A stretch of 64,000 nt of DNA, from positions 19,902,001 to 19,966,000 of the forward strand of contig NC_087256.1 in assembly GCF_037042905.1 (NCBI RefSeq), read 5' to 3'. Positions 9,704-45,545 of the stretch are shown piece by piece. The DNA comes from Lytechinus pictus. Its lineage: Eukaryota. A model generated the notes under the pieces. It saw nothing but the letters and a program-made list of their open reading frames with translations, was not told the origin of the DNA and did not search any database. Made by a program: the position numbers and the translations under genes. Position 1 is the stretch's first letter. Each line of letters starts with the position of its first letter.

Positions 9704-12700
9704 TTACTGCTGGCAGTAAGTATCCTTGCCATTAGTTTCCAGATAGAACGACCCAGTGGCAGTGCTCTGGTCCGCGTTGTATCCCATCTCCGGACAGCCA
9801 GCCAGCCCACATCGGGTGCATAGACCAGCTTGGTACTGGTTCCACGAACCGCATGGGTACGCGGTAAAAGCGCAATCTGTTGACCGGATGCTCTCCTCAA
9901 AGTAGTAGACTGACCGGAAGTGATCGCAAGCGACCTCACGAAGCAAGGGACATCCGGGCATGTCGTCGCCTCCGTTCGGGTAGAAATCGACGTGCCCAAC
10001 CTGTTAGAAGTGTGTGGAAATAAAATTTGGTTTATGATAATCATCTTTTCATTCATCCTCCTCTTCCTGTTTATCTTCATCCTCTTCGTTCCCCTCTTCC
10101 TTTTCGTTCTTATCCCTCTTCTGGTTTTTATCCTCATTCATCTCTTCCCTTTCTTCTTCTAATCATCTTCCCTAGTATCCTCCTCGACCTTTCTTCCCAT
10201 TATCATCTCCGTTTCTACCTCATACTCATCGTCTTTGTCTTCCTCCTCCTTCTAACCCTCTTCCACTTCCTCGTCCTTGTCATTTTTCTCACCATTCTCC
10301 TCATCCTTGTGCTTTTCCTTATCCTGCGTCTTCCTATTCCTTTCCTTCTTTTTCTTTTGCTGGAGAATCTGCTCCCTCATTTAGAGAAGGTTTTTTGCAC
10401 ATCACGTATGGTTTAATGACCTAATACGAAATGATCTATTCCTTGCTGCATGTATCTAATTTTGCCTTTCAAGTGTGCAAATTACTTTTCCATACACTTT
10501 TTCTGCAAGCTCCAACCCTGAGTCCTCAAATAAAAGTATTCACGTTATAGAGATGACATCTGCTAATGACTCTTAGTATATCGGGATGCCCCTCCAGGGA
10601 AGTCTGACTGTTCTTCAAGTACCGACTTCAATGGTTAGGCCTACATTACCCCCCCCCCCCCCCCACCCACCCTTACACATGTCTCCAAAACGCAATAATT
10701 TGGTGTCGAAAGGCAGTCCTATACATTCGTAATTGTAAGATAATTTTGACTATTATTTGCCAAATTTACAATCATTTAGCCTATATTTCAACTCTTACGC
10801 TGTGATTGAAATTCTCAATCTATACATACCGGTTCGAGGATGCCCATTCCAAGAATTTCATGGGTATCTGTGTGAATGTTATCAACGAAGAGGGCGTCGG
10901 AGGGATCCAGTCTACATTCTGGATCAACACCACGGAAGGATGGGCCAGCTGGGTCAAGACCTGTCGAGGGGGAAGAAAGAAAAACAGTGGCGTATCTAAA
11001 TGAGGAGATAACGGGATAAGCCTTCATGCCCCATGGACTACTTCGGGGCGCCAAAACAAAAACTTCTTTAAAATCTTTAAATTAAGATATAAAAATGAGG
11101 GGGGTTGGGTTGAAAGTATTTTGAACCTTCAAAAAACTAAGAAAAGAATGATGTGGCAGCTGAACTGAAAAGGGCGTATTAAACCACTGAAAATTCTAGA
11201 TTAATCAAAACAATGATGATCTGCCATTTACAGGCATATACCATGGTATATAGAGGGAGTGAGGGAAGAGGGGTGGTTAATAATGAGGAGGATGTCAACG
11301 TCATTTTCTGCTGCTAAGACTTTTCCTTCTTTATCTTAACTCCTGAAAAGAATCTATATTTTTTGTTTTTCTTCTAGTGACTCAATAAACAATGTCATAT
11401 GTGTGGATACTGGAACAACTTTCCAAGCGTGCTAAATAATTTATCTGATATCAATCCAATGAGGTATTATTTACCAGTAATACGACCTAATCCGGATTGG
11501 AAGGCCCCTGCGTAGCCGGCTGTATGGGCTCCCAGGCTATGGCCAATAAGATGCATATCACCGAAATCTGCCCCATGAACTCTGAAAAAAAAATCAATAA
11601 TAATTTCTATTCTATATTTTTTTTTATCAGCAAAACATTTATTGGGGGAAATCTGCCTTGCATCGCCTGAATAAGGGGGTGAGATAAGAGTTAAAGGAGA
11701 TTCCGCCGCGTCATGGACCATAAAGGTTGTCAAATCTAAAGCTCCCTGAAATTGGCTGCCTTGAATCCTTAAAATCACTCGTCCTAAAAAATGTCACCTT
11801 TCTTTCATGTTGTCAAGCAAATAAATGTTTTAAATTGCTTACCTTGGACATATATTCATTTTGCTCAATTGCTTGTCTTTTTTTTCTTTTTTATTTGGGG
11901 GGGGGGGGCTAATTTCTATTCTCTTCATGATGGCCTTGTTTTTTAACGGTCTTCTTTCCGTTACTTCTTCACCCCTAGCTTTGTGCTCCTTTTCAATAAA
12001 AAAAGTCTTCCCCCCACCCCGTAACACCGCCCCTGCGCAGAGTCATATCTACTTACCTGTTAAGGGCACGTGCCAACATTGCTATCTCTCGGCCAACCAC
12101 CCTCGTGTTTTGACGGCAAAGATTGTAGCCTCCGTTAGCCCCATCATTCCAATCCACCATGATCACGTTCATATTCTCCTGTGACAATATTAAAAGAATT
12201 CTTATAAGATCGATATGTATGTATTCAGCCCTTTTCCTTCCGAAGCTGCCATCCTCACTCAATTGCAGAAAAAATATACCTACAACCTCGCACAATCTCA
12301 CACACCCACTCCTATCCCACATGCATCTCTTAACCACACACGCATATACACACACCCTCTCTTTCACACTCACCCTCACACATGGACACCCACACACCTT
12401 CCTTGCAATTCTCACGGAACCCACTCACACAAATACGCACACCATCCACATAATCCACCCACACACAATCTCACCCTATGACAAACATACATTACGCACA
12501 CTAGTATTTTTTGCAAGATTTTTAAAAATTATTGATTATCAGTGATATCGAACGAATCGCAAAATCTTTTCTGCAAAGTTTTATTTTCGATCTTATAAGA
12601 CAATAATGAATTCTAATCACCATTTAGATAGGCTAATTGCTTTATGTCACCATACTCTTCATTTATTCTTATCCAGTATTTGTTTTTGGAGAGTTCGGTT

Positions 12701-13576
12701 GCTCCTTGCATTTTAAATATTCAAGGAATAACTAATGATATTCATATCGTTGAATAAATTTAGTTTCTATATAGGCCGAAGAACTTAAAATTTTAATTAT
12801 TCAGTTGTAATCAAAGTAAACAAAGACAAATGAACTTTCAGCAAGTTTACTATGGAGCTTTGGTAGAATTTTACAGTTAAAGGTTACCTTATTTAGGAGT
12901 GAGTTTTTGATTGCCTGGAAGTAATCTGAAAAGATTGTATCGGTGAAGCCATGGATGATGAACTTTGTCTGGAGTCGGCCATCCAAGAGTGACGCCATCA
13001 GGTTCCCGTCGTCGTTGCGGTCGAGGAGCTGGTGGTCGCCTTGGGCTTGGTTCGACCGGGTGTAGAGGAAGAACTGGGTGTTGACCTTGGCTGGTGATTC
13101 GGGCGGGAAGCGAAGCGAATGGCACGAGGCCGAGTCGTCGAAGCAGCCCAAGCCATCGTAGCAAACCTCACGTGCAAATGCTTGGGATATAAAGCAGTAA
13201 ATCATGAAAATCGATATAAAAGGGACTATTTGTTTTTCTTTAGATATAACTTTTTTTAACAACTCAACGTCAAAACCGTTTTTTCATCAAAACTATATTG
13301 ATAGAGGAAAGTTGCCTTCTTAAAACTGAGTTTGATCTTGTAAGAGTTGTTGCTCATGATATTCATTTACATCACAATATATTTCTTTTTACAAACAGTA
13401 TTGCTGAAATATTTGCTTATCCGTTTCATCTGACTTTGTTATCAGTTATATATCATTCGAAATTTATTACGATATACATATTTCTTTTTTGGTTGGTAGA
13501 AAAAAAATTGGGCAGCATTTTTCTCACCTGACTGGAGGAATAGCAATGTGGATAAGACCACGGCAAGCCCGTCCAT
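9704..13576 (-). CDS. Lipase 1: secreted pancreatic lipase-related (PLRP2/PLA1-like) protein, 332 aa. Exons 13576-13528, 13180-12888, 12178-12057, 11581-11475, 10960-10830, 10000-9704
   Basis: Signal peptide [19 protein letters not shown]; motifs [27 protein letters not shown] (Ser), GLDPAGP (Asp), [16 protein letters not shown] (His). All junctions are GT-AG, phases 1,0,2,1,0, summing to 999 nt. Confidence 0.92.
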
Positions 13577-14681
13577 TACGTCTTTTTTTTCTTCTTTTTT
13601 TTAAATTATTATTATCCCCGTTTGGTTCACAGATAGAATTTCACAAGTTCAGAAAGGAGTACTTGATACGGAGTGAAAAAATAGATCCTGTATCCTATGT
13701 TGTAGAATCTTCTAGCACCAATAGAGGAAATACACAGTTAATGATGTAATTTTGTCACAACTATCCTTGTTCTCTGTCGCCTTACGTATTATCCATAAAG
13801 GACTAATTTGAGGTAAAAGCGTGTCACACGCTGAGGAATTCGATAATGTTTCCGTTAATAGTGGCTAATCTCCTGATCTCTTTGTTTAACTGATTTTGTG
13901 ATAAATTCGGTCGCATGCCTATAAACTTTATTGACTTTGTATACCTATATCGTTTGTTTATAGATAGCATAAACGAACAAAGAAAGATACGATACGAGGT
14001 TATCACCACCGGTGAAAAAAAACGTAGAGCGAATGAATAATGAACGAATTTCCAACTTTATTTTCTTTGAAATAGATTGTAAACCGATATGACTCACCTT
14101 CAAAATTATTACTATATTTTCTATACCATGTTCTTCTTTCTTATAACGCAGTTTTGATATCAGTGAATTTTCATCAAATTATGTTATGATGAAAATTTTG
14201 CTTTATCGTTAGGAAATGCAATTATTCTGATTAATATCAAAATGATAAAAATAATTATAAGCATATTTAAATCTAAGAATATCAATAGAAAATGGTGATA
14301 ATAATCATAACGACGACGAAGATATAACTACTGATTATTAAAAACAAGTGGTAGTGATCATCAGACTAACAACAATAACAATACCCACATTAAACCATAG
14401 CATTAAGAATAGGCTTAATGAAAGCTTGAATATTTTGGAGGGCATTGAAGAACTAATTTCATACTCAAACTTTACGACCAAGACCACAATCAAAGGATTA
14501 GTGAAATAAAGTTTAACATCTTTATCACAACTCTATCTTTTCATTCGTATGATTATGCTATCACATAGGGATTATATTTACCTAGAATTTCATATCAGAA
14601 AGAACTCGTAATCGTTTACGTAAAAACGCAGTTGGAACAATCATTATGCATCTTCCTTTGTACACGAGTGGTGCCATAAAA

Positions 14682-17600
14682 ATGTACACCCTTCCCCTGG
14701 CTCTTCTTCTAATCCTTGGAATTACTCAACAAGGTAACTATGGCAACGTTTCAGCATCCACTTAAAAAAAGTTATTTTAGATTTTATTTTATTTGTGTTC
14801 ATATAACACAGTTACGGGCGAAATTAAAAATATAAACATTTCTTGTGCATCAAAGCTTTCATTTCTTGCTTATAAATTTGCCATTCAGCTTAGATAAAAG
14901 CGACGTACTTTGGTGACTTAACCATAAGTAATTATTTCTAAAGAACCATGCATTTGTTTGTTTTTGTTTGGGTAACAGGAGTTTGTTTTAAGTTAATTCC
15001 CTCTCTTACATTTCTCAATTTCAATTGCGATAAACTAGAATTCATCTTTTTGTTTTTCTTCAGAACTGATGCTATATGCGGTGAATAATTATTTCGATTA
15101 TGCGTGAAATTTCAGAGTGTTTCATTTCTCATTTTAACACTTCACTGTCTTCTGGGCTTAGTACATGCTACCCTACCTCCGATTCGAAAGATAGTTTTCC
15201 TATCGGATCGTCTCTGTATAGTGACGGTTTGTAGCATTGCCTTCAATTTGTTTCTCAATGTTCAGGTGATCACCATGACCAAGACTGTCTAGCGCGTTAA
15301 AGTAGGCCTATCCATGTAAAACACAAGTTCATATGTTATCTGGGGCAATGAAAAAATGTTCTTGTCATCATTTCCTTTCAACTTTCTAAATATTTATCTT
15401 AAAACTGATTAATAAATATTAATCATTGTAATTCACCGTACAACTCATCATCCTATATGCGTTGTTAAATGCCAATTAGCAGTCGAAGCTGAAGAAGTAT
15501 GCTTTGACGATGTCGGGTGCTTCGCCGATGATTCTTGCCACATCCCCGGTTTTCCACCACGATCACCGGACATCATCAACACACGCTTTCTGCTCTTCAC
15601 ACGGACGAACAGGGACGACTACCAGGAGCTGAACCTGCACGATGTCGAAGGACTGCGGGCTTCGAACTTCGACCCGAAGAGGAAGACGAAGATGTTCGTG
15701 CATGGCTGGTGGGCGTACGGACTAGATCCAGAAGAACTCGAGAGGAAAGATGCCTTCCTTGAAATGGTGACTATATTTTCTCTTGTTCTCTAGAGTTTGG
15801 ATACAATGTTGATGTCTTCATCCTGTAATGTGAACACCGAAAGAAAGAATAAAGAACATTATTATTCCGATCTTTTGGAATCATGATTCATTTTGTAAGA
15901 CTACTTTATTTTCATTAGAACTCCATGAGTTATTTGTTAGATTTTTGTAGACATTCTTACATGGATTAGGAGGCCTACTAATTTTTTAATACCTGATGAA
16001 TTCGTTGCTTCCATGAAACTTATTCGCAAATTTGAAATTCCGAATTGTAACTACCAGGAGGATGCTAATGTCATCCTGGTCGACTGGGAGAGGGGAGCGG
16101 CCGAGCCACGCTACGGGGTAGCCCATCAGAATACCAGGGTGGTCGGGCGACAGATTGGACTACTTGCCCGCTTCTTGAACCTCGAGACTGGAATGTATTT
16201 CAGGGATGTTCATCTGATCGGTTCGAGTCTCGATCGGGGCACACGCCGCAGGGTACGCCGGACAGTACCAGCCAGGATTCGGTAGAATTTCAGGTAAGGA
16301 GAATTATTAAAAGTAATGGCTCATATTATCCATGATTTATATAGACCTACCTACGACCCTAGACAATTTGAATAATATATTTTCTTGGAAGGGATGACGT
16401 ATATACATCCAAACAAAATATATTTTTGGAGTATACTCCCGCCCAACCAACATCAGCAAGGAAACTTATTAATACATTCACATCTAACCCTGATAATGGA
16501 AGGGGAATTTTGTAAACCGGACATCACAATGGGTCACGGTTCTTACATCTTTGGTAAAACTTCACAAGATAATTAAACCAATTAAATCAGGTATTTTTCT
16601 CTTTATTTTCATGCAGGCCTTGACCCCGCTGGCCCATACTTTCGCGACGAAGGATTCGACTTCCGCGATAATGGACCCGATTGCCGGCTCGATCCAACAG
16701 ATGCCATCTTTGTTGACGTCATCCATACTGATGCCAATGATATCACAGGTCTAGGACAGATGCTTCCGGTGAGAGCTAGCACCAGATATCATCTTTCTTT
16801 AGGGCTTATTGCATGGGTTTAAGAAAATAGTTCACCTACATTTTTAACGGAATGGAATAATTATGGCGTGGATATTGGCGGCTATACACTTGTTGCCATT
16901 GCCGTCTTGACTTGTAACACTTATCTATACTAAAGTGGTCGTCGCATTGTTGAGTCGTTTGATTATAATTGTTTTTGAAGGGGTAATGAAACTTCCTGTT
17001 CGTGTATGCACTTTTGAAGCTGTTAAACTGTGATGACAGCTTTCTTTACTCTGCATATAGGCCTTTCCAAATGTATCTTTAAATTACCCCAATTAAGGTG
17101 ATCTGTCAGTTCATCAGGCTTGAAAAATATTTGCATCTTGGCAAGACGGTTAATATGAAACTAGTATTCTTTCAAGGGATTTAGCATTTCTGAAAAAGCA
17201 ACTCATATCAAGGTATTTTGGCCTACATTCATCGCTGATTAAAGCCTCCTACATTACTTTCTCTCCTGGACCAACTGCCGACTGACAAATGATGCTTTCG
17301 TAGAAATGAAATCTGGGCCTTTTTTACGATGGAGCTAAGTCTGTGGATGAAATATAGGAATACAAATATTTGGAATATTAGAATATTGAAAAAAGGGGGG
17401 AAATATTATTGTAGGCCTATATGCATCCACAACCGTCATCTTAAATCAACTTGCCTTTCTGTTGTGAATTTTAGGCCTTCGGTGACAGGTTTCAATTTGT
17501 TTGTCCATGTTCAACAGCTAGGACATCAGGATTTCTACCCCAACGGTGGCCGCAAGCAAGCCGAATGTAACCTCATCGACCTCCTCTCGGGATGCAGTCA

Positions 17601-17817
17601 TTCCCGAGCCTGGAAGCTTTTTACCGAAAGTATCCTCTCCACTTGCAGCTTCACTGCGTACCCATGCGAGAGTTGGGCGCAGTTCGTGGCCGGTAACTGC
17701 GGCGATTGCGGTACGCGCGGTTGTCCCATCATGGGTTACCGCGCCGACGAAAACACCGCGGTTACGGGTAAATTTTACCTGTACACGAATGGGGATTCTC
17801 CATATTGCATAGACTGA
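14682..17817 (+). pseudogene. Lipase 2: pancreatic lipase-related gene with a 4-bp frameshift in exon 3. Exons 14682-14733, 15483-15766, 16058-16293, 16617-16768, 17518-17817
   Basis: Signal exon MYTLPLALLLILGITQQ; motifs [33 protein letters not shown]. Extra GATC at 16232-16235 converts GSSLG-AHAAGYAG into GSSLD.. with TAG at 16283-16285. Other exons are intact, so this could be a null allele or an assembly error. Confidence 0.8.
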
Positions 17818-18212
17818 TGCAGAAGTAGTAGGCAACTCAGTATATGACTTAAACAGATAAGGAAAAATGAGACAAACAAAACGCTGAAAATTAGATCAAA
17901 ATCGGCCATGGAATAAGAAATTTATGACATTTTAAAGAATTGCATGATTTCGGTGAAACAATTCTATGCATGTCTTCATGAATATTCAATGAGCAAACTG
18001 ATTTCAAATCCCTACTTGTTACTTTAGTGTTTTATTACATGAAATTATATTTGTTTTTCCCCAATAACTGAAGAAATTGATTGACAACTAATTTTTTAAT
18101 GCATTTAATATTCAGTGATGCAACTTATTTTATTGTAAGGGAGACATGTCATACACACTATATGAAAATTATATGATTTCATGTAATAATATAAGAAAAA
18201 GGGAAGTGGGGG

Positions 18213-20500
18213 TAGGGCCGTAGCCAGAAGCATTTTGTTGGGGGGGTGTACCAGCTAAATTTGCCAACTAAATTTGGCGTGACAGCGCCAACGTGAGCAC
18301 AGGGGGAGTCTGATGGGGGATGTGCCCCCCCCCCCTACAATAATCACATGCTAAAAGATTTTGAATTTTTAGAATTGAATTGGTGGCATTTGGTGAATAC
18401 TTTAAGGTAAAGTATACAAAGATATACAAAGATATTTGCACTTTAAAAAATAAAGGCTAGTGTGCCGTAGTTGCTAACTTGCAGTATAATGATATACCCT
18501 ATATGCAATAATGATATCAAAATCAAAGATTTGTTAATTTTTAATTGACCTTCTGTGCAAGATGTCTCAACTAAAATTTCAAGAGTGCTACTGCTAACAG
18601 TGACGTACCGTGGGTCACCAGCAAAAATTTAGAGTCATTAAGTGGGCGCGCTCAATTGCCAGGTATACTGACCTGATCAGACGGAGACGTTTTAAGGACT
18701 GTGGCATTAAACGGATATGTATCTTAGTGATCAAATAATGCGAGCGCGAAGCGCGAGCTGAAAATGTTTGATATTCAGTCCTAAAAAGGGACATTATAAG
18801 CAAAGTTTTGTAATCATGATACGTACCTGTCTTACAAAACAAACAATGCGAGCGCGAAGCGTGAGCTGAAATTTTTTGTATAACTTAACCCTAAAAAGGA
18901 ACATTTTCAGGACTATCTTTTGGAATTTATGAAGTGCGTACGTATCTCATCATAGTCATCTAATACAAGCGCCAAGCGCTTGCTGATTTTGTTAGAATTA
19001 CACTGGCACATGAAGCACTTTTTGTGGTCATTGTAATCATGAACATGATACGTATTTCACTAATGAAATATTGCGGGCGAGAAGCGCGAGGTGACAATTT
19101 TTGAAATTCAGACCTGAAGAGGGGCATTCTATGGCTTGTTTGTAGGAATTTACTATTTCACTAATTAAGTGATGCGAGCGCGAAGCGCGAGCTGAAAATT
19201 TGTTATAATTAGATCAGAAAAAGGGACATTTTAAGGACTGTCTTTAGGAATTCGTGCACTGCAAAAACGCCTGTGTTGATTTAACACCAGCCCGGTATCT
19301 ATATCGGTCCACACCAATGCGAACGTAAGCACTGACTGGAAATGTTTTATTAAGGCCTTAAAAGGGGGCAATCACTTTAAGTATATAGTCATGAAAAAAG
19401 CATATGTCACTACATAAAACAATGATAACTTGAAGTGCGAGGAGATAGTTTTTTGCATAATCTTTATGGACTTAAAATACAACAGGACTTTATGTCTCAT
19501 TAGTCAGACAATGCGAGCACCAGGAATGATGCAACCCCAACCTGCCCCCATCCCCATCCTAAGCACCTTCTGACACCATAAATTAAAAAAAAAGTTTAGT
19601 AAAAATAACTTAGAACATTTTTGTGTTTTTTGCCAACTGCAAACTTGTAGACAAGCCAGTCTACAAGTTGTAGACTTGTCTTCATGAATTTGCCAACTGC
19701 AGAGTTACCATTTTTTAAAGTCTTGTGTTCTGTTCTTTTCAGATCTGAAACGGGGCAGTACTTGTACATCACTTTGCTGACTGGTAGAGCGTATAGTGTT
19801 CTGCCACTTTAATAGGCCCACTTTATAATTTGCCAACTATACTTTGGCTTTGATTATTCAACTTAAACCTTGGAAATTCATCCAACCCAATATTTATGAA
19901 CCTAGTCTTGCCTCTAATTTTACAAAACTAATGTGTTTGTTAAATCGTCAATAATTGTGGTATAATTTGCAAACTAACAAGCTTGTTCACATTGGGGGAG
20001 GACCGGGGGCTTACTTTGTGTGTTATTATAGCTCCATCTGTTTTGTACTTAGTATTTTGCTGACTAGTAGGGCTCTAAGCCTGGCTACATGGACTTGGAT
20101 TTGCCAATTGGTTGTCTTTACTCTAAAAGTCGTTACCTTCTTCNNNNNNNNNNNNNNNNNNNNNNNNNNNNNNNNNNNNNNNNNNNNNNNNNNNNNNNNN
20201 NNNNNNNNNNNNNNNNNNNNNNNNNNNNNNNNNNNNNNNNNNNNNNNNNNNNNNNNNNNNNNNNNNNNNNNNNNNNNNNNNNNNNNNNNNNNNNNNNNNN
20301 NNNNNNNNNNNNNNNNNNNNNNNNNNNNNNNNNNNNNNNNNNNNNNNNNNNNNNNNNNNNNNNNNNNNNNNNNNNNNNNNNNNNNNNNNNNNNNNNNNNN
20401 NNNNNNNNNNNNNNNNNCAACTGGTACATGATTTTGCCGACTGCCACGAATGTTGGGGGGGTGTCGCACCCCCCATACCCCCCCTCTAGCTACGGCCCTG
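18213..20500. mobile_element. Composite non-autonomous hAT-type element (spans an N gap), inserted into an older Kolobok-like MITE (~17850-18212 and 20501-20680)
   Basis: TIRs TAGGGCCGTAGC / GCTACGGCCCTG with 8-bp TSD AGTGGGGG (18205-18212, 20501-20508). ~18598-19530 is homologous to the element at 42445-43599. Confidence 0.75.
20144..20417. other. Assembly gap (N run)
   Basis: Run of N. Confidence 1.
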
Positions 20501-20813: not shown

Positions 20814-20849
<36 letters not shown>

Positions 20850-30900: not shown

Positions 30901-31495
30901 TAGAGTTATGGGAAATTTTTGCTCTTTAAAAACGTCATATTTGCGTTATCTGCTTAAAATATAGCCATATATGGTGCATTATTTTCGATTAATAGGCCAG
31001 AATGAGACTCTCTCAGAACAGTCCTCATTAGAAATAAATGACTAACAATCACACCAAATCATACATTCCTAAAAATATATACCTTATCATTATGTTCGTC
31101 TTGCGTACAAAAGTTTCAATTTTGATGACACTTTTTTTTTCCATTTTACACGTGGACTCGTCACACATTTACATATGTTATCTTTGCAGCTTGGCCATCA
31201 AGATTTCTACCCAAATGGAGGACGCAGGCAGCCCGGGTGCGACGGCCCAGACTTGACATCCGGATGCAGCCATTCCTGGGCATGGAGACTATTTACTGAT
31301 AGCATTCGATCCACAACTTGCGATTTTACCGCGTACCCCTGCCAGAATTGGGCTCTGTTCGTTGGCGGTAACTGCCGTGAGTGCGGTGACCGCGGTTGCG
31401 CAATCATGGGTTACCATGCCGACCAGAACACTGCAGTGACGGGCAAGTTCTACTTGACGACGAACGCAGAGATTCCATATTGCATACCTGAATAA
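21941..31495 (+). CDS. Lipase 3: secreted pancreatic lipase-related protein, 340 aa. Exons 21941-21992, 26094-26377, 27125-27353, 28389-28540, 31190-31495
   Basis: Signal MAFRRLLLIVLGVLSKQVLS; motifs EICYDDVGCF, HGY, VIGMSLGAQ, GLDPAGP, HTD, GHQDFYPNGG, CSH. Exon lengths 52+284+229+152+306=1023 nt; exons 2-5 have the same lengths as in paralog 4. Confidence 0.9.
22237..22730. repeat. ~494-bp near-perfect hairpin/palindromic MITE in intron 1 of lipase 3
   Basis: ACCGGCTGTTCATATACAACCG... is mirrored by ...CGGTTGTATATGAACAGCCGGT. Arms are ~235 bp with few mismatches; loop ~22 bp at ~22472-22494. Confidence 0.9.
27834..28160. mobile_element. hAT-type MITE (same family as 20681-21024) in intron 3 of lipase 3
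   Basis: Termini CACTGGCGTACCTA / TAGGTACGCTAGTG; TSD GGGCGATC / GGGTGATC. Confidence 0.85.
28632..30292 (-). mobile_element. Full-length Tc1/mariner element (1661 bp)
   Basis: Perfect 23-bp TIRs CACTGTTGGTCATAAAGGTGGAA, TA TSD on both sides, encodes a Tc1 transposase. Confidence 0.95.
28961..29983 (-). pseudogene. Tc1-family transposase, 340 codons, inactivated by premature TAG (W to stop) at 29186-29188
   Basis: HTH motif (IAEVLGISQSAVSKIL), GRPR, FTEESRF, QDDNARPH, LP*PACSPDMNPIDHAW and C-terminal GGHTRY. The two listed ORFs are in frame across the stop. Confidence 0.92.
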
Positions 31496-33048: not shown

Positions 33049-35037
33049 ATGGATTTCATGTACCTAACATGCCTAATCTGGCTTAGTTTTGTTTCAAGAC
33101 AAGGTAAGTTATTGAAATTTTTAAGACGTGTTTTCTTGAATCTCGCTAATAATAATATTCATCAATTTGTACCAGTATTAATTATGACAAAGGTCATGAC
33201 ATTTGTTTGTTGGTAATGCCATTTTAAAGTGTGCTCTTTTTTAAACTCTTATTCACTTGCATTTTCTTTGGAATGCAATTATGTATATATCATTAGTCAA
33301 AACCTACGTATGTAGGTAGCATAATGATTTATTAAAAAATATATTACAGTGGTAATGTGACGAGTTATTTAGCAATGATGACGCGTGGAATTGTTTTTTT
33401 TAGCGAGAGAGTGGAATGTGCTTTAATAATTGGACTACAATTCATTTTTCTGCATTGAAAAACATGAAACACTTTCAGAAAAAAAATAGGTTTGTTATGT
33501 AATAAATGTATGGAATTGTCAACTATAAGTTAAAATTGCACAAAGTATCATAACTAGGCCTACTTAAAATATTATATCATTATTTAACCAACAGCTATGG
33601 TAGGTTAATAGATTTACCTAATAACTGATAACTGGATTTAGAAATCCTGAGAATACACGTGGGCATATAGGCCTACTCACTTTTCAATAGTAGAAAGTAA
33701 CAATTTGTCCTCTCTTTGTTTTGCGTCTTAATTTTAAAGTTTTATCCGAAGAAATTTGTTATGAGGAAGTCGGTTGTTTTACGGACGAAGATTGCCACTG
33801 GTTAGGTTTCCCACCAAACCAACCATCCGATATCAATACCCGGTTCTTCCTATATACCCGACGTAACCGGTTTGAACCGCAGGAGCTCCGACGCGGTGAT
33901 ATCGACGGCCTTCGAGCGTCGAACTTTGACCCGAGGAAGAAGACGGTCTTCTCTTCACACGGTTATACTTCGGATTCTTTCACGTCATGGGAGCTGGATA
34001 AAAAGAACGCCCTCCTCGAAGCGGTGGGTGTCTAATCATTCTTCCAATATTATGAAATGATAATATTCCAATTTTATAACAGAGCGACTTCTCTAAGCGC
34101 TTGATATAACATTACCTCTGTCATCTGATTATTGCTTGCCCGCACATAATGTATGCACTTTCTCCAGTCCCTGGGGAACATTCCATGATTCCAGCATTAA
34201 TTTCCAAACTTATGCACACTACACTAGCTTTCGCATCCCAAATCTAAAAGAGTTTTTTGAACCAATACTTAGAATAAAACAATAATACACATCAATTGAT
34301 CGCAAGGCCAAGTGGGCAAACTTACTTAATGGTTTATGGCCATAAAAGTGTTCAAATTGTAACATTCTTTAAAAAGATACAATATTCTACTGGCGAGTCA
34401 CAAAACACTCGGAATCCACATTCAACACACTTGTCAAGCAAGCTTTGGGCAAAGTTTCGAGTTGTGATTTTGAAATGTTTATAAGCCAGAAAATCATTAT
34501 GCCACAGATCTATTATCCATATAATTATTTGATTTTGTCTGTCTTATATCTTTCTTCCATCATCATTACCGGGCATCATCACCACCATCATCCTCCTCAT
34601 CATCATCTTCATCGTAATTTATATAATTTTCATCATTATCATCGTCGTCTTCGAATGCAGGAGGACTCAAACGTCATCTGCGTAGACTGGGGTGCGGGCG
34701 CCCTGGGTCTATACAGCAAATGTCATCAGAACACCCGGGTAGTTGGCCGAGAGGTCGGTTTGCTGGCCAGATTTCTCAACCTCGAGACCGGCATGTATTA
34801 CAAGGACGTTCATTTGGTCGGTATGAGTCTCGGAGCCCACGTCATGGGATACGCTGGCGAGTTTCAACCTGGTATTGGAAGAATAACAGGTATGCTGACA
34901 GAGTGTGTAGTTTCATTTTGCCTATTTACCTTGGACTTTGTATATTGATCAGTTGCAAGGCAAAATCGCTTACACATAATATAACTATATTGGAAATTGG
35001 CTTAGAGTGTCCAAAACACAGTGCCCCCCCCCCCCCC

Positions 35038-35068
<31 letters not shown>

Positions 35069-36503
35069 GATAAAAAATAAATAAATAAAAAATAAATAAA
35101 AAACATACACACAAAGACCTTGATAGGCTGACTTTACCTGTTTGTTTAATTCTTCTTTCAGGTCTCGACCCCGCAGGTCCTTATTTTCGCGATGAAGGTT
35201 TCGACTTCCGTAACAACGGACCCCAGTGTCGACTGGATCCGACGGACGCCATCTTTGTTGACGTCATTCATACAGATGCCAATGACATTACAGGACTCGG
35301 ACAGATGCAACAGGTCTGGGTCTTTTTTCTTGCTTTATGTGATTGTGTTTTAATAATAATAATACAAAAAGTTTTTTTCGTATACATAATAAACCGATTG
35401 TGACAATTTTGTTAATTGAAGATAAAAATTATTTTTTAATATCCCTCAACGAGACTGTAGGCATGAAATATCTTTGTGGATATGGGTTCACTTTCCGGCT
35501 CACTTTGTCAAACATTTATAGTTCTCGTTGACCAAAAAAACGGTCGACCAAATGGACCAATGGACACCTATCACAAATTTGACTAGCAAAACAAAAAAGA
35601 TAATAGAATATCAACTCCAAGAGCTTTTGACATTACAACCTTGTTATTATTCCTGACCTTTAACAATAACCTAATCATTGATCATCACCTCTTGACTAAA
35701 TTTTCCAAACTGTGTGGAGTTTTTTCCTCAATCTTAAACATTATTGGGACTGATTATTTATATTTTTCACCTATTAGATATTTATGATTTTATTCAGTAT
35801 GGACGATGGAAGTTGAATTGGTTATATTCAACTGAATTCAACTTGACGAACCAATTTCCCCTTCTTTTCATACAATTGTTATGTTTGATAAGTACCTTTG
35901 ATCTTGTCCATAATACCTAAGAAATATCTCAGTCTTGGTTTTCCACGCCCCCTCAGACGTCCCCCTCTCCATTGGCGGCGGAAGCCAAAAATTTAGGAAG
36001 GTCCACCTGAAATTTTGGGATGGACACAGGTAAAAAATTTGACAAGCAAAAAAAAAAGGTTATCACCCAAAAAATGTTAGGGGGGATCGTCCCCCATCTC
36101 AAATTTAGGGGGACAGGACCCCCCCCCCCCCCCGCTTCCGACGCCTATGCCCCTCTCCCACCAAATCTAATCATATTCCAATATATTATATTCATAGATG
36201 GGGCATCAAGACTTTTACCCTAATGGTGGACGAACCCAGCCCGGTTGTACCGAGTCAGACCTTCTCTCCGGTTGCAGTCACATGCGCGCTGTCGCTCTAT
36301 TCAGCGAGAGCGCGCGGTCAACCACCTGCAAATTTACCGCGTACCCGTGCGACAGCTGGAGAAACTTTACATCCGGTGGATGCGGTGATTGCGGAGAGAG
36401 CGGTTGCGCCGTGATGGGCTTCCTCGCTGACCAAAACACCGCAGTTAGCGGTAATTTTTACCTCCACACCGATTCGCAGTCGCCCTATTGTTTGCAAGAT
36501 TAA
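33049..36503 (+). CDS. Lipase 4: secreted pancreatic lipase-related protein, 341 aa. Exons 33049-33103, 33740-34023, 34661-34889, 35162-35313, 36198-36503
   Basis: Signal MDFMYLTCLIWLSFVSRQVLS; motifs [42 protein letters not shown]. 1026 nt in frame. Confidence 0.92.
35970..36149. mobile_element. hAT-type MITE in intron 4 of lipase 4
   Basis: Termini CATTGGCGGCGGAAGC / GCTTCCGACGCCTATG; 8-bp TSD CCCCTCTC. Confidence 0.8.
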
Positions 36504-37511
36504 CGGATGCATAGTCTTATTCTTGGGTTTCATTGTATATGAAAATAGCTATTTGCTTTCAAAATATCTGATGCAGAGATGTGCAATAGGTCATAGTTAT
36601 GATGTCATAATGACAGAGTATATTTTTTTGTTTAAATGTTTGTTGAAAATAGTAATCGTTTTACATAAATATAAATATCCCTTTAATGTCTACTAGTAGT
36701 AATAACACAATAAAGTTACTAGCGATTTGTCGTGGTACTAGCACAATGCTAACATTAATCATGTTCATTTGCTGAATTCTTAAATTAAGGGTGTATTCAG
36801 AGGTTCATGCACGTTCAGAAAATAGACATGAATCTATTCATTCACATTAATTTTGATTATAATTAGCAAGACATTTGTATGCCAATTTTACAACCTTATA
36901 AGATCATACGCAACTATATTTACTTTATATATATTTCAAAAATTTGATTGCAGTTTCTTTTGTCATTTTTGTAGTATTGTTGTATACCGTTTGCTGGTAA
37001 TAGAAACAATATTCTCCTAAATTTTCCGGTTGATAATGGGATATGAATATAGGAGACAAAAAATGCGAACTATGTAATATTGGGTAATGAAATAATTAGG
37101 TATTTTAGCCATGTATTTTTTGTTTGTTTCTGTAATCTCATAAAAATAGAATCTACAATACTAACAATAAAGAAAGATGCTAATCATAATAGTGGAATCA
37201 ATGCGATAGGGATGAAGAACTGAATGCGATGATTTGTGGGTGCCATGCACGATGAGATGGCGATAGAATAAATTGATGATAGTAGTGATGTCGGTATATA
37301 GTGATGATGTGGATGTGGAAGATTGTTGTGGTGATTCTGATGACGAATTGTAATATATTGCAGCAATAAGGGTTGAAGGGCATCGAATTATGTCACGTCA
37401 AGGCATAGCAATAACAATGAACAAAACTGAAGGCTGATGAGGGGTAGAAAATATATGTGCTATAATGGGATGTAGCAGGTAATAATTGTGGTGTTGGTGA
37501 TCATTCTGACT

Positions 37512-37535
37512 ATGATGATGATGATGATGAAATAT

Positions 37536-37566
<31 letters not shown>

Positions 37567-37800
37567 TGTGGTGGTGATGACGATGTTCGAGACGACGACG
37601 CTTATTACGATGACTCCGATACTAAATGGATGCATGGTGAAGATGATGAGGACGACGACGATGATATTGTTTACGACGTCGATTATGATGATGATGATGA
37701 TGATGACGACGATGTTCGAGACGACGACGCTTTTATTACGATGACTCCTATACTAAATGGATGCATGGTGAGGATGACGATGATGGCGACGAGGTTGGTG
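37512..37800. repeat. (GAT/GAC/GGT)n microsatellite region with a ~130-bp tandem duplication
   Basis: GATGTTCGAGACGACGACGC..TACTAAATGGATGCATGGTGA occurs twice. Confidence 0.8.
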
Positions 37801-38231
37801 TTGAAGACAATGATGAATTATTACTGAGCAATTCTGTAGAATCGAGATAGCGGTGAGGCAAGATACTCAGCCTCTTCAGTATTTAGAAATTTAGATAGCT
37901 GTCGGTCAAAGTTTTCATTTAAAGCATCTTGGTAATAAGAACTATAGACCTTATATTGATTTTGATTTCTAGCAGATTGGGATATTGAATTCTTATGTAT
38001 ACATATAGTAAAACTCAACAAAACGATACTAGTGTATGTCCCATAATTCAGAGGGATGATTTGACTAATTCTTATAGCAAAGATAAGATTTGATAATCTG
38101 ATTGTGGCCTGAATATAGCATCTGCACCAATTCTCATAACAAAAAATGATAAACAGTAGGTCGAGCTTTTGAAGGGTCATAGTATTTACAGTTTCATGAT
38201 TATACTCGAGCAAGCCCTGGACAAATCCATC

Positions 38232-41200
38232 ATGAAACTATACGTTCCACTCTTCGCTTTGCTGTTTGCTTATCATGGTGAGTGATTTTTTTTATTCATT
38301 TCTCTTTTTGTAGATTCTCAACGATATATAAATCAGAACTATATTTGAAATTCCATCGATTGTAATTAGGGATGAATTCGAGATTGAATATATATATCTT
38401 TTAACTCTACGTGACCTAAATCAAAATTATATATTTGTGTGTGTGTGTGTATATATACATATATATATAATTTTGGATTTCCTCTCAAACACAACCTTTT
38501 TATTGGTTTTAGATCAAGGACATTCCGGCAATAGGCCTTCGTGAAATATTGAATGTTTTTATATTATTTTATGTTATTTGATATGGTTTCGCAAAGAACA
38601 GTCGATGATATTTTTCTCTCTGTGACTGAGTCAATACCAGAGTCCTTGCGTATTTCATCGGTAGTATATAATTTTAACAGAGTTTTTTTTTACATATTCA
38701 GTTATACGTGCGTAGGCCTATCATGTTCTTTATATCAAAAGATTTTTAAACACCTAATAGATGTACTTTAAAGTAAGCTACAAATTTATATTCAATTTCA
38801 TATCATGCCGAATAACATTATATAGTATATCACGGAGAAGATTTCCTGAAAATTGGGCTTTATTTTTCTCCTCGTTGTTAGAAGATACGGCGTTCGAACA
38901 CACGAAACCTATCCATATCTTCTGAATACTATAGGGTCGAGGATATTCTAAATGATATATTGTGGTAGTCATAAATATTGATTTTATACATGACTTGCGT
39001 GGAAAGATGACCTATTAATGCCTAATCTTGATTGTGAAAATGCTATGATAGGTACCACCCCCCCCCCGGCCCCACCCCACAAAAAGGGTGAAAGTCGTGT
39101 TTTATATCGTTTTCTTAACCCCCCCCTCCCCCTACAGTTCAAGCCGCCGAGATCTGTTACGAAGGCTTGGGCTGCTTCACAGACGATCTCGAGTGCCACA
39201 AATACCGCTTCCCGCCACAAACTCTGGAAGAAATCGACCTCCACTTCTACCTCTACACTCGACGTACACGGGACACACCCTACGAGCTATTTTGGAATGA
39301 CGTCGAGAATATTCGAAGCTCGAACTTTGACCCGCTGAAGAAGACAAAGATTGTGACGCATGGTTTCCTGGGGAATTACTCAGAGCCTATTTACGCCGAC
39401 ATTAAGGATGGCTTTATTGCAAGGGTAAGTTGATTTTATGATTACAAAATACAGAACTATAAAACAACAGCAATCGAATGAAATTCGACAAATAGTTTAT
39501 TTGATCAGAACGATACCAGAAATAAATGTATGTCGACAGTAGTGGACCGTGACCCGGAGGAGACAAAGCATTGGAGGGGCACTGTATTGTTTGTGAACAA
39601 TGCTGTGCCCCCCCCCCCAAATGCTTTGTCTCCTCCGGGTCACGGTCCGCCACTGTATGTCGATGAAATTATGATTGCAATCACCTGTTAGATGAGAGCG
39701 TAGATATGACGAATGTCACGTAGCGAAATCGTGATTGGTCAAAAGTTAATCACGTGAGGAGATCTCCGTCCACCAATCACACGAGAATTACGCCTAGGAC
39801 ATGTAGGAGTATACTGTCCAGAATGAAAATGTGTTGCAGAGCTATACTGCCTGCACATAAATGTTGAGACCAACAGGGTGTATTATTTGATGAATCAAGT
39901 TCTTTTTTGCGATTTTGGGCCTATTAATATATTGTATATGTATACCTGTACGTCATTCTATTGGTTATATAATATATATTTGCTGATGTGAATTAAAATT
40001 ACATTCCACCGCTGCCAAACTTAAGGAGCATGCCAAGGTTCGTTCAGCACCCCTTGGTAGATTGCAATGGAAGGTTTACCAGGCAGACACTCGAGAGTTT
40101 TCGCAACTGCAATAGGGACAGATTCAAGAACACAGTAAATGTATTGAAAATGCTCTTCAAATGACAATGAAGAGTTGGAAGGTCTTTGTTGAAAATTGAT
40201 GAACCGGAACAGCAGTTTCTTCCTAAGTTTCGGAGCTGACAAAAACAATTTCAAATGTGTCGTTTGTTCAGAGTCCAGGACAAAACTGCTGTTTTGACTC
40301 AACCATTTTCCATGTTTTGGACAAAGACGTCTCGGTTTTCTTTGACGGTTCCATGACATTTGCTCCGGCGACAATTGCTCCGATGGAAGATCTGCACGTT
40401 AAGTCAACTATTATAATCTAATCTCCAAAACTAAATAAACCCTTATCCTTATCTTCACACTCTTTCGAAACAAAAACTCTATTACAATCCCAGCTGTAAC
40501 TCCATTCCCTCTGCGATATTAAGACCGGAGTAAATGTCGCAGGAGCAATTGTCGTGTCACCTCTTTGGTTTAATTTGAAGGGCATTTGGCAATATATTTT
40601 TCTATGTTTTTTTAATCCGCCATGCGTCGTGGAAACAAAAGCACCCTAGTGGTTGTAATACGTTTCTCCATGCAGATGCATTGACGCTACCCCCCCCCCC
40701 CCCGCAGGAGTCAAAATACGAATAATAAACCAATGTATATTAACAAAATCGAAAATCATAACATCCCCTTGAAGATTTAGATTCAAGATTCTTTTATTGG
40801 TCAATGTACGCATACAAAGAAATTTTGTTTTCAATTGCTCTAACAATTTAGGTATACACAAAGATGAAAAGTACAATTTATCATAACAATATTGAAAACT
40901 TTATACATTAAAAAAAAAACTAAGCTATTAACTTTCTGCAATTACTTTAGTACCCCTAAAAAATCATTTTTTTTACAAGTAATAATTTTCATATAATTTA
41001 TTTAAGTTTATATTCAAATAGCTATATCATTCTCTTCAAAATATTTTAGGAAGATGTGAATTTCATTCTCCTTGACTGGCGGGATGGGGCCGTGACGCTT
41101 TATCCGAGGGCCATGCAGAACGCCAGGGTGGTGGCCCGCCAACTCAGTCTTCTCATCAAGGCCTTGAACAGGGAGTTTGGAGCCTACTACAAAGACGTCC

Positions 41201-44200
41201 ACATCATGGGCTACAGTCTTGGTGGCCACGTCGCCGGGTACGTCGGGCAAGAGATCCCTGGACTTGGAAGGATTACTGGTAAATAAACAGATCAATTTTT
41301 ATTTCTTCATGATCAGGATGAAAGTCGGCCATAGGTACCTAAGCTCTGGATAGCGGTTTCCTGATTTAATTTAATTTATCACATTTTTAAAATCATTTCC
41401 ATTGCTTTTATTACGATTATTGAATTTTTGTCATGATTATATTACGTTTGTGTTTGTAATGTTGTATACTCATTTCTGATGTGAATGCAGAAATGAAATC
41501 AATCAATCAAATCTATCTATAAAACTCGATCAAAATGATAGTTTTATTTACGTGTCGTTTCCCGTGCTGTTTCCACATGTGATTTTTAAAACTACCGGGT
41601 ATGTTAATTTGCAAAAAAATATCCATGGTTGCTAATTTGCGGGGTGAAAGTAGAATTATTTCAAACTCAGAAAACTTGAGGACCATCACTCTCTACAATT
41701 ATCATTCCTCTTCATTACAGGTCTTGATCCAGCCGGTCCTGGTTTTCAGAACACTGACATTCCCGAATGTAGATTGGATAAAAGTGATGCGATCCTTGTA
41801 GACGTCATCCATACTGATGGAAGACCTGCTGGATATGGAACACTTACACCGGTAAGAACTCTTTATTGATTGTGATGATATAACTGCGTCACTTGCTGAT
41901 CCAGGGGAGGGGCAAAGCCGGCCGGTGCCCCCCTTGAGAAGCACAATTAAAGTTTGTAATATAAAAATGCCGTTAAAACTGAAGTGTGCCCCCCCCCCTT
42001 TGAAAGTGAAGAATTTTTTTTTTGGTTGTCAATTTTTTTGAGTGGACGAAATATCCTTAATTTGGGGTTAAAACCCATTTTTTTTTTGCTTGTCAAATAA
42101 TGTGCCCCCCCACCCCTTTTGGAAAATCTTGGATCCGCCCCTCAATTGCATGTACTCCTTAAGTAATATGATTGTCATTTTTCATGAGTCAGGCTCTCGA
42201 GTATATAATATACACATCATGTTTGTTTGGTTTGTTTTTTCAAAATAGCTGATTTTTTGTTTGGTCACTGACGGGAAATATCCCAGTTCGATTTCGTATT
42301 TTTAGATAAAAGGCTTTGCTCTGAAACGCGTAGGACACTGGCGTAAATCCGTGTTGATGGGTGGGGGGGGGATGACTGAAATATTTTGGCATTTTTTTGC
42401 AATCCTGTTTTTAGATATGCAAGGAATTGTCATTGATATGTCCACAGTGGCGTACCGTGGGTCACGGCATTGGGGAGGGGGGCACCAGCGAAATGTTTGA
42501 ATCACTGAGTGACCGAGCGCGCTCAGTTGCCAGTTATACTGACCTACTAGGGACATTTTCTGGACAATGTCATTAAACGGATATGCATCTCACTGATCAA
42601 ATAATGCGAGCGCAAAGCGCGAGCCGAATTTTTGTTATATTCACACCTAAAAAGATACATTATAATCAAATTTGTGTAATCATGACAGGTACCTGTCTCG
42701 CTAAACAATAAGAGCGCGAAGCGCGAGCTGAAGTTTTCGTATATTTTGACCCCAAACAGCGAGATTTTGAGGAATATATTTTAGGAATCCATTAAGAGTT
42801 TGCATATCTCACCATAGTCATCTAATGCGAGTGCCAAGCGCTTGCTGGTTTATAAGAATTACATCTGAACACATGAAACACTTTTTGTAGTCATTGCAAT
42901 CATGATTTTCATACGCATCTCACCAATCAAATATTGCGAGCGCGAAGCGCGAGCTGAAAACTTAGATAATTCAGACCTGAAGTGGGGCATTCTAAGGTTT
43001 CTTTGTAGGAATTAACTAGGACCATACGTATTTCAATATCCAAATGATGCGAGCGCGAAGTGCGAGCTGAAAATTTTTGATATTCAAATCAGAAGAAGGG
43101 ACATTTTAAGGACTGATTTTAGGAATTCATGAAGAGCAGACATATCTCACCAATCCACTAATGCGAACGTAATCACGGACAGGAAATGTTTCATATATAC
43201 GAAGACCTTAACATGGGGCAATCACTTTTTGAGTCATGAAAAAGAAGCATATGTCACTACATAAAACAATGATAACTCAAGTGCTAGGAAATATATTTGG
43301 TTTATATTGACTTGAAAACGGGATGTTTCAGTACAACAGGATTATATATCTCGTTAACAGACAATGCAAGCACCAGGAACAATGAATACGTAGGCCCTGG
43401 GCAAATTATGTTTCATGAAGTTATGATAAAAATGTTTCTTATGTAATGTAACATAACATAATTACAATATAACATTATAATGAATAATATTTTCTTCTTT
43501 CCCACTATACGCTTTTCTTCCTTTCTCCCTCTTTTCTCCTTTTCCCCCTTTTTTTTTTGGTCAGCCGATGGGGGGGGGGGGGCCGTAGTTACGCCACTGT
43601 ATGTCCATATGGCAAATATATACCCCTCTAATATTATTATCTTTTTTACCCCATGATGGTTTAATGGTTTAATTAGAGATTACATTAAAAAAGAATTGAC
43701 ATTCCAACTTAATCCCTTCCCAAAGACCCCAACATTGATGAATTAGAAGAAACGGGAGTTTCGCTTCAATGTTATAATAAGGACATAAGTATTTCGTTTG
43801 GAAATGGTGAACTGGCTCTTTATTTGCATTTTATGATTCAATTATATTGTTTTATTTGTTAAGCGGTATTTCAGGAAGAATCTTCACCAATAAAACAATT
43901 ATCTCTTGTGATTTTTTTTCATTTCTTTCGTAAAAAGTGGGGGGGATGTTTGTACAGGCCATCCCCCCCTCCTCAAAAAGTGGGGGGGATATATCCCCCC
44001 CATCCCCCCCGGGATTTACGCCAGTGGCGTAGGACGTTGATTTTTTTTAATCTATCATCTTTGGGGATGACGTGTTGTTGATGGCGGGTTCTAAGTTATT
44101 TCATCGGCCGATTTCATTTTCTTGTTTTCTGTTATTTTTTTCACACTCCTCATCGTTTCCCACTCCTTCTTTTTCCACTCCAACTTTTTTTTTTTCTTCT

Positions 44201-45545
44201 TCTACCCCTTTCTTCTTTAGCCTTCCTTTTTCAATTCACTTCAATTACCTCTTTTTTTCTTTCTTTCTTTCTTTACTTCTTACGTTTTATTTATTATTAT
44301 TATTATATATATATATCCATATTTATCTACATGTATCTTTCTTTTTGCAACTTTTTAAATAGTTCGGTCATATGGATTTCTACCCCAATGGTGGTCTTGA
44401 TCAGGAAGGGTGTTCTTTAGATGTTGTGTCTGTATGCAGTCATATGAGAGGTAGAGATTACTTCCTCGAAAGTCTGGTCAACCAAGACTGTCACTTTACA
44501 TCCTATCCGTGCTCCGACTGGAATAGGTAAGGTGGGAGGTAGATAGCGAAAGAGGAGAGGGAGAAGAATAGGATGAGCGAGGGGGAGGGGAGGAGGTACC
44601 AGGGGTCCATTTCATAAAAAGTGTTATCGTACAAAATTTGCAATAACAGTTTGAAGCTACTGAAATCAGTCAATTTGATTGGCTGATAGTAAACTTGTTA
44701 TAGACATTGTACATAAATTGTATTTTGTTATTATAACAAGGACCCTGATAAGCCTATAGAAAGATTCGAGAAGAAATTAACATGGGTGAAGATTGGGCAA
44801 TTCGACAAAGAGATTCATACATAAGAAATTAAGAACAAATTCGCAGGCTGAAAGAATAAACATGATAAATCAATTAACGGATCATAACTTATACTAGACA
44901 TGTTCTTCTTTTTTTATGAAGTCATTTTATCATCAGGTATGCAGGGACCGCGCCAGTCTGTTTTTTATAGGGAACGGTGGGGTGGCGGAGATCACGATTT
45001 CATGATGACTTTTGAAAGCATTATTTTATTTCCCTTTAATTGAATTGTGATGGAAAAATACTGTGATTTCTGCCGGCGTGTGTTACCAATAGGTTGGCCT
45101 ATCTGGTTAACACTCTTCTTTCTTCGCTTTTCTTCCTTTGTTTTCTTGCATTTCATCTCCTTTTTTCTTTTTTGTACTTTTTTAAAAGAATTAATGAGGG
45201 GCCGCCCCCATGCACCCACCAGTGACGCCGCCCGCGCCCCCGTCGTCGGAAGAATACAAAAAAAAAATACGGCGAAGGAAATGCTTGCATATTATAAATT
45301 TAGTCGTTATTTTTTGCCAATACTTTGCTAAGACCTATCTGTTTTATACATGATACGCCTTTTTTGATGCAGTTTTACTTTTTTGTTTTGCTTTATTTTT
45401 TTTATTTTTTAGCTTTCGTCTCGGTCGATGTAATTCTTGCGATGACGGTGGGTGTCCACCTATGGGTATCGATGCCGAGCTCAACCCGATCGAAGGCTCA
45501 TTCTACCTCCGAACCAACGCCCAATCTACATTCTGCATAGAATAA
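38232..45545 (+). CDS. Lipase 5: secreted pancreatic lipase-related protein, 329 aa. Exons 38232-38277, 39138-39424, 41050-41278, 41721-41851, 44363-44526, 45413-45545
   Basis: Signal [18 protein letters not shown]; motifs [45 protein letters not shown]. 990 nt in frame; the stop overlaps AATAAA. Confidence 0.92.
39537..39655. mobile_element. 119-bp hAT-type MITE
   Basis: ~38-bp TIRs (..GGACCGTGACCCGGAGGAGACAAAGCATT); perfect TSD TATGTCGA. Confidence 0.9.
42336..44026. mobile_element. hAT-type MITE (outer) containing a nested element
   Basis: TIRs CACTGGCGTAAATCC / GGATTTACGCCAGTG; perfect TSD GCGTAGGA. Confidence 0.88.
42445..43599. mobile_element. hAT-type non-autonomous element (inner, 1155 bp) with ~110-bp internal repeats
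   Basis: Termini CAGTGGCGTA / TACGCCACTG; perfect TSD TATGTCCA; repeated GCGAGCGCGAAGCGCGAGCTG. Confidence 0.88.

Follow-up and report, generated by a model that had tools for sequence, protein, structure and literature searches.

The closest described systems to the genes considered here are the digestive lipases of the sea urchin Strongylocentrotus purpuratus. There, exocrine pancreas-like cells in the upper stomach of the larva express SpPnlp2/5, and feeding raises this expression (PMC4880809). A transcript list for acinar-like cells contains, in consecutive positions, Sp-Pnlip_8 (LOC592803), Sp-Pnlip_7 (LOC100888764), and Sp-Pnlip_6 (LOC592819), and continues with Sp-Pnlip_2/5 (LOC583538) and LOC592851, both of which have transcript variants (PMC9437490 supplement). 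Two loops, the lid and β9, are used to sort related enzymes. A review of mammalian phospholipases A1 (PLA1s) counts 18–19 β9 residues in lipases and 13 in PLA1s (PMC9031518), and in insects, counted from His to His, a β9 loop of more than 15 residues is said to permit triglyceride hydrolysis, whereas the PLA1 type has 15 (PMC7240578). Five paralogous lipase genes of family PF00151, here called g1–g5, span positions 9704–45545 of a 64,000-nucleotide stretch of the Lytechinus pictus genome (contig NC_087256.1, 19,902,001–19,966,000; hereafter, the window).

This array is an old syntenic echinoid cluster that has been conserved in evolution. Gene g1 (9704–13576) lies on the minus strand, head to head with g2 (14646–17817), and g2, g3 (21941–31495), g4 (33049–36503), and g5 (38232–45545) lie on the plus strand. 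The S. purpuratus locus has the same order and orientation (g1 minus, then g2, g3, and g4 plus), and its orthologs of g1–g4 are 85–88% identical to the L. pictus genes. The array probably comprises five secreted, single-domain PF00151 serine hydrolases that are most likely digestive and made by exocrine gut cells. In kind the genes are unremarkable: they are annotated digestive lipases of the PLAT-less, short-lid PF00151 sort, and their S. purpuratus counterparts are published markers of gut exocrine cells.

Every tested exon of g1–g5 scores above the PF00151 gathering score, and the combined coverage runs from position 2 to position 336 of 336. Because the profile is covered to its last position, the proteins end with the lipase domain. 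A signal-peptide exon is present in each gene. Alignment of the five proteins places a Ser-Asp-His triad in GxSxG, GLDPA(GP), and C-x-H contexts, although in g2 the triad can be read only across a frameshift. Across 111 homologs, residues S169, D192, H268, C257, and C266 (g4 numbering) vary little or not at all.

In a family tree of 78 proteins with wasp sequences as the outgroup, all echinoderm proteins form one clade (Shimodaira–Hasegawa-like approximate likelihood-ratio support, 97) beside those of hemichordates, and the vertebrate PNLIP/PLRP group is found elsewhere, with tunicates. Orthology of g1–g5 to PLRP2 is ruled out, because the echinoderm proteins form a clade of their own apart from vertebrate PNLIP/PLRP. 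An earlier reading of the window, made without database searches (the sequence-only reading), had linked the genes to PLA1-type enzymes and had proposed a phylogeny against PNLIP, PLRP2, and PLA1s as a check; the tree yields an echinoderm-specific clade and no clade shared with wasp PLA1. Three old lineages are seen within the tree, namely g1, the g2–g4 group, and g5. Each of g1–g4 has Strongylocentrotus and Diadema counterparts and g1 also a sea-cucumber counterpart, whereas g5 has only Diadema orthologs in this set.

The predicted fold also points away from PLA1 kinship. The AlphaFold2 model of g4, based on 110 homologs, has a mean predicted local distance difference test score (pLDDT) of 91.6; the signal peptide, an insertion of 7 residues that follows the catalytic Asp, and the very end of the C-terminus are the only parts of low confidence. 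In a Foldseek search of the PDB with this model, the first hit is 1GPL, a chimera of guinea-pig PLRP2 with a mini-lid (E = 2e-37, TM score 0.84, 41% identity), followed by human PLRP2, PLRP1, and PNLIP, and then LPL. Hornet PLA1 (4QNN) comes only at rank 18, sharing 28% identity, and the proposed PLA1-type kinship is therefore not upheld, as g4 is nearer to PNLIP/PLRP2. The 7-residue insertion (..DEGFDFR..) lengthens the stretch from the catalytic Asp to the HTD strand in g2 (16650–16690), g3 (28420–28460), and g4 (35195–35235); g1, g5, and PLRP2 lack it, and its pLDDT in the g4 model is low.

Lid, β9 Loop, and C-Terminus

Counted from Cys to Cys, the lid has 7 residues in g1 and g5 and 8 in g2, g3, and g4, and the catalytic C-x-H follows directly. 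A mini-lid of 7–8 residues before the catalytic His had been reported from the sequence alone, and the quoted peptides are indeed found in g1 (C-PLLREVA-C, 9952–9926, minus strand) and, on the plus strand, in g2 (C-NLIDLLSG-C, 17566–17595), g3 (C-DGPDLTSG-C, 31238–31267), g4 (C-TESDLLSG-C, 36246–36275), and g5 (C-SLDVVSV-C, 44411–44437). In the lid alignment, PLRP2/PNLIP chains need 15–18 inserted residues, and guinea-pig PLRP2 (1GPL) is 3 residues shorter than g4. These lids fall short of the PNLIP type (~22–23 residues) and lie within the bound of ≤12 residues given for the PLA1 type (PMC9031518).

The β9 loop, measured from HTD to GH, has 13 residues in g1–g4 and 12 in g5, compared with 16 in PLRP2/PNLIP and about 10 in PLA1s, and its coding sequence is interrupted by an intron. 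The same loops have ~15–16 residues on the count of the mammalian review (PMC9031518) and 17–18 from His to His, which exceeds the insect threshold. None of g1–g5 has the deleted β9 of extracellular PLA1s. The description of this loop as short in the sequence-only reading is thus overstated; 12–13 residues is an intermediate length and not PLA1-short.

All five proteins end in Y/F-C followed by 2–3 residues and a stop codon, and the claim that they stop there and carry no PLAT domain is borne out in every case; the C-terminal PLAT domain that marks the PNLIP type is missing from each. No credible PLAT coding sequence was found in the window by tblastn with 60 homolog PLAT tails (best E value 0.05, matches scattered). 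In the 812-Mb genome, where last exons of at least 21 PF00151 genes were detected, 0 of 31 PF01477 matches lies near any PF00151 match. Splicing to downstream PLAT exons, which would have overturned the single-domain build, is rejected, because the window holds no PLAT and an mRNA contig of g2 retains the TGA stop codon (17815–17817).

Two further Cys residues are found in this region. The terminal Cys (..PYC; g4 residue 338, 36489–36491) is invariant in 111 aligned homologs, as is an extra Cys after the catalytic His (g4 residue 284, 36327–36329), and both have equivalents in all five genes. Cys 284 and Cys 338 may form an additional disulfide pinning the C-terminus. In a Pinctada homolog, a PLAT-like extension begins immediately after the terminal Cys.

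Lid and β9 lengths are identical in the one-to-one orthologs of L. variegatus and S. purpuratus. In Diadema relatives, loop lengths are kept for g1 and for the g2–g4 group, whereas the β9 of g5 orthologs has 10 residues compared with 12 in g5. The sequence-only reading had taken the array to be a special enzyme set, but the same build is common to essentially all echinoid PF00151 genes examined. Other paralogs in L. pictus and S. purpuratus have lids of 5–8 residues and no PLAT. Among about 220 single-domain relatives, the class with a lid of ≤9 residues, a β9 of 12–14, and no C-terminal extension has 41 members; no other short-lid class is as large, and only the classical PLAT-type class with a long lid (53) exceeds it. 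Judged from these alignments, the mini-lid PLAT-less build is a family-wide echinoid trait and is not peculiar to the array. Further PF00151 clusters occur on the same contig (contig 12) at about 4.0, 5.03–5.07, and 17.37 Mb and on contigs 5, 6, 11, 15, 16, and 17.

Probable Digestive Role and Substrate Range

The five proteins would consist of a signal peptide followed by an α/β-hydrolase lipase domain and would be secreted by acinar-like gut cells. A disulfide-bounded lid of 7–8 residues is probably too small to cap the active site in the manner of the 23-residue PNLIP lid, and a protein with no PLAT domain would offer no docking site for colipase; the enzymes would then need neither colipase nor interfacial activation of the classical kind. 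On the model of 1GPL and of work on PLRP2 (PMC8287333), we infer from the short lid and the missing PLAT that the active site is open and that colipase is not needed. The claim that the enzymes are colipase-independent and constitutively open therefore stands in part: the build excludes a PNLIP-type colipase/PLAT mechanism and a long-lid interfacial switch, and openness itself is likely by analogy.

A digestive role had also been claimed, and it is well supported as far as the S. purpuratus genes listed for acinar-like cells correspond to the array. Those genes, in the listed order, would be the orthologs at the g5 position and of g4, g3, g2, and g1. This mapping is based on product names, isoform pattern, early versus late accession series, gene order, and the offset between XP and LOC numbers, which is identical in two genes (XP_797417/LOC592819 and XP_797449/LOC592851). 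No paper mapping the S. purpuratus LOC, XP, and SPU identifiers came up in a literature search, and the supplement text of Perillo 2016 gives no primer or identifier for SpPnlp2/5. What stands is the presence of the S. purpuratus counterparts in acinar-like stomach cells (PMC4880809, PMC9437490), from which the role of the L. pictus genes is extrapolated.

Several points weigh against the reading of the array as five secreted digestive hydrolases. The link between Sp-Pnlip/LOC identifiers and orthologs is itself indirect, and g2 is frameshifted in this assembly. A search with the colipase profile PF01114 (40 positions) gave no match in the L. pictus genome, and control genomes were equally silent. 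No enzymology was found in the literature for any echinoderm member.

Non-digestive roles, such as lipoprotein or yolk lipid handling or immunity, are very unlikely. The PF00151 family does include members of this kind (LPL, LIPH, and insect yolk proteins). However, the S. purpuratus counterparts are in the acinar-like list, one of them responds to feeding, and g1–g5 have signal peptides and neither a membrane anchor nor a heparin-binding C-terminal domain.

Within the digestive reading, a broad range covering both triglycerides and polar acyl-lipids is the most economical expectation. Sea urchins are algal grazers, which agrees with the narrower proposal that the five enzymes are specialized PLA1/galactolipases for algal membrane lipids (monogalactosyldiacylglycerol, digalactosyldiacylglycerol, and phospholipids) with little triglyceride activity. 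Guinea-pig PLRP2 (5 residues) and vespid PLA1 have lids of a size comparable with the 7–8 residues of the array, and the structure search puts 1GPL at the top. In addition, PS-PLA1 (lid 12, β9 13) has no triglyceride activity (PMC9031518), insect lids of <18 residues are taken to predict weak triglyceride hydrolysis (PMC7240578), and PLRP2 acts as a galactolipase in herbivores and omnivores (PMC8287333). The β9 loop argues in the other direction, as it exceeds the 15-residue His-to-His threshold for triglycerides (17–18) and is longer than that of PLA1s on the review count (~15–16 versus 13). The proteins are nearer to PNLIP/PLRP2 than to hornet PLA1. Moreover, every echinoid PF00151 gene examined is built in this way, so that the urchin would be left without any triglyceride lipase of the family. 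A galactolipase or phospholipase preference is plausible, but exclusive specialization of all five enzymes is doubtful.

The opposite proposal, that g1–g5 are plain digestive triglyceride lipases whose short lid and lack of PLAT represent an ancestral ambulacrarian build of no substrate meaning, is slightly less likely still. It fits the occurrence of the PLAT-less short-lid build in hemichordate as well as echinoderm relatives and the β9 loop, which is not PLA1-short. The isolated PNLIP N-terminal domain is also reported to hydrolyze long-chain triglycerides (PMC3745449). However, the members characterized so far gain phospholipase and galactolipase activity when their lid is deleted or shortened (PMC8287333), and pure triglyceride specificity would be unusual.

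A bolder conjecture goes further: echinoids, and perhaps all ambulacrarians, might digest acyl-lipids wholly by lid-less, colipase-independent PF00151 enzymes, with g1, the g2–g4 group, and g5 partitioning substrates and at least one of them a dedicated thylakoid galactolipase. This is a speculative proposal, with odds clearly against it. If such partitioning is true, the array would be a simple model for the evolution of substrate range by way of the lid and β9 loops. More generally, it offers a conserved group of pancreatic-lipase relatives, lid-less by nature, in a grazing deuterostome, and assays could reveal which lipids the exocrine cells of an algal grazer target and whether loop differences between paralogs track substrate. 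For annotation, labels such as "PLRP2-like" and "pancreatic triacylglycerol lipase-like" are evidence of neither orthology nor substrate.

Gene Models and the g2 Frameshift

Lipase exons were first located by six-frame motif and open reading frame (ORF) scans of the window, which gave the five lid peptides and four to five paralogous exon families, and gene models were assembled by hand with GT..AG introns and conserved phases. The genes are already annotated, under the RefSeq names "pancreatic lipase-related protein 2-like" or "pancreatic triacylglycerol lipase-like." A hidden sixth lipase gene and stray lipase exons are rejected, as tblastn with the five proteins as queries found none in the window.

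Gene g1 encodes 332 amino acids in six coding exons on the minus strand (13576–13528, signal peptide; 13180–12888; 12178–12057; 11581–11475; 10960–10830; and 10000–9704, with the stop codon). All splice sites are GT..AG, the GHSLG elbow is at 11544–11530, and the protein is exactly RefSeq XP_054766048.2. RNA reads were placed on window positions 12450–18440, with runs X1, X5, X23, and X24 tested. A contig from run X1 bears out the signal exon of g1 by joining 13528 to 13180, and the 5′ untranslated region (UTR) reaches at least 13775. The raw reads of runs X23 and X24 give almost no depth over g1 or g2 and have no bearing on expression.

Gene g2 has five coding exons: the signal exon ending at 14733 (ATG at 14646 or 14682), 15480/15483–15766, 16058–16293, 16617–16768, and 17518–17817. 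A tandem TAG/CAG acceptor (15478–15483) allows exon 2 to start at 15480 or 15483, adding or omitting one Ala after the signal peptide. The older L. pictus RefSeq isoforms X1 and X2 (XP_054766046.1 and XP_054766047.1) differ by this Ala, and the transcript in run X5 uses the upstream acceptor (15480).

In this assembly, the frame of g2 is broken by a 4-nucleotide insertion at about 16232–16235, within the G-S-S-L-G nucleophile elbow encoded by exon 3. The GxSxG exon has 236 nucleotides in g2 and 229 in g3, g4, and g5, that is, one additional codon plus 4 nucleotides. A spliced RNA contig of 1324 nucleotides from run X5, which derives from another sample, has its joints exactly at the modelled exon borders and does not contain the 4 nucleotides ("16230 left out 4," depth 17). 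The older RefSeq proteins have an intact frame and are 98% identical to g2. With the intact transcript and the intact older proteins, the g2 lesion is specific to this assembly or haplotype.

It is accordingly improbable that g2 is a pseudogene in this genome and that part of the array is decaying. The frameshift in the catalytic elbow speaks for this, as does the presence of g2 proteins in nr only as older ".1" entries when g1 and g4 have ".2" versions on a 32.1-Mb contig. Against it are the two ORF halves, which are otherwise open and conserved (95% identity to L. variegatus, 85% to S. purpuratus), the spliced transcript without the insertion, and the intact proteins of the earlier assembly. 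The insertion is more plausibly a lesion of one allele or an error of the assembly than the mark of a fixed pseudogene.

The run X5 contig of g2 continues for 255 nucleotides past 17837, and its first 30 nucleotides (≤3 mismatches allowed) have no match anywhere in the window. A chimeric contig, a difference between haplotypes, or a 3′ UTR intron leading to an exon beyond the readable sequence could account for this continuation. Just past the g2 stop codon, at 17850–18250, RNA contigs from two studies show numerous loose ends and word depths in the thousands, and this segment looks like a high-copy transcribed repeat. Farther downstream, 18618–19414 is similar to 42550–43261 in a g5 intron (41852–44362) and is probably a dispersed repeat. 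An assembly gap (N run) occupies 20144–20417, after the g2 stop codon (17817) and before g3, whose coding sequence opens at 21941; tblastn with the five proteins found no lipase-like coding sequence between 17814 and 21941. The gap is outside all coding exons, and frame continuity across it is therefore not an issue for any coding sequence.

Gene g3 encodes 340 amino acids in five coding exons (21941–21992, signal peptide; 26094–26377; 27125–27353; 28389–28540; and 31190–31495), and the protein is identical to RefSeq XP_054765628.1 when the signal exon at 21941 is used. A second candidate signal exon (25805–25847) is ruled out, as both RefSeq and tblastn place the signal exon at 21941–21992. 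Intron 4 of g3 (28541–31189) contains a 300-amino-acid transposase-like ORF on the minus strand (29189–30088) with a helix-turn-helix-like N-terminus, which resembles Tc1/mariner elements. The donor at 28541 is still GT despite this ORF, and the RefSeq model splices over it.

Gene g4 encodes 341 amino acids in five coding exons (33049–33103, signal peptide; 33740–34023; 34661–34889; 35162–35313; and 36198–36503) and matches RefSeq XP_054766049.2 exactly. Between g4 and g5, overlapping open frames with runs of Asp, Met, Thr, and Val (37466–37824) are of low complexity and probably non-coding. Gene g5 encodes 329 amino acids in six coding exons (38232–38277, signal peptide; 39138–39424; 41050–41278; 41721–41851; 44363–44526; and 45413–45545), with GT..AG sites, an open frame, and an additional intron that divides the last exon. 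Its length equals that of the 329-amino-acid L. pictus protein in the older RefSeq version, from which it differs by seven substitutions. A second assembly gap (46420–46556, 137 N) lies ~0.9 kb downstream of the g5 stop codon.

Comparison with Known Lipases

The array resembles several characterized systems in part. Like PS-PLA1, LIPH, and LIPI, the urchin proteins have a lid that is short relative to that of PNLIP, but the former have a lid of 12 residues, a β9 of 13 on the review count, and a C-terminal domain (PMC9031518), whereas the urchin lid is shorter, the β9 is longer, and there is no C-terminal domain. Vespid venom PLA1 (4QNN) and PLAT-less insect neutral lipases share the single-domain, PLAT-less, short-lid plan. 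Vespid PLA1 differs in its low identity (28%) and Foldseek rank (18), and the PLA1-type β9 of insects has 15 residues from His to His (PMC7240578), compared with 17–18 in the urchin.

PLRP2, represented by the guinea-pig 1GPL chimera and human 2OXE, provides the best sequence and fold matches and shares the triad and the core disulfides, and the guinea-pig lid has 5 residues. In the urchin proteins, PLAT is missing and the HTD-to-GH loop has 12–13 residues, whereas PLRP2 carries PLAT at its C-terminus and has 16 residues in the loop. The urchin proteins also have extra Cys residues, including the terminal one, and fall outside the vertebrate PNLIP/PLRP clade. The nearest system is the S. purpuratus array of Sp-Pnlip_2/5, 6, 7, 8, and LOC592851, the genes of which are positional orthologs with matching lid and β9 lengths and the same ...YC-xx C-terminus. 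The L. pictus array differs from it in its much longer introns and intergenic regions, and its correspondence with the published identifiers is probable.

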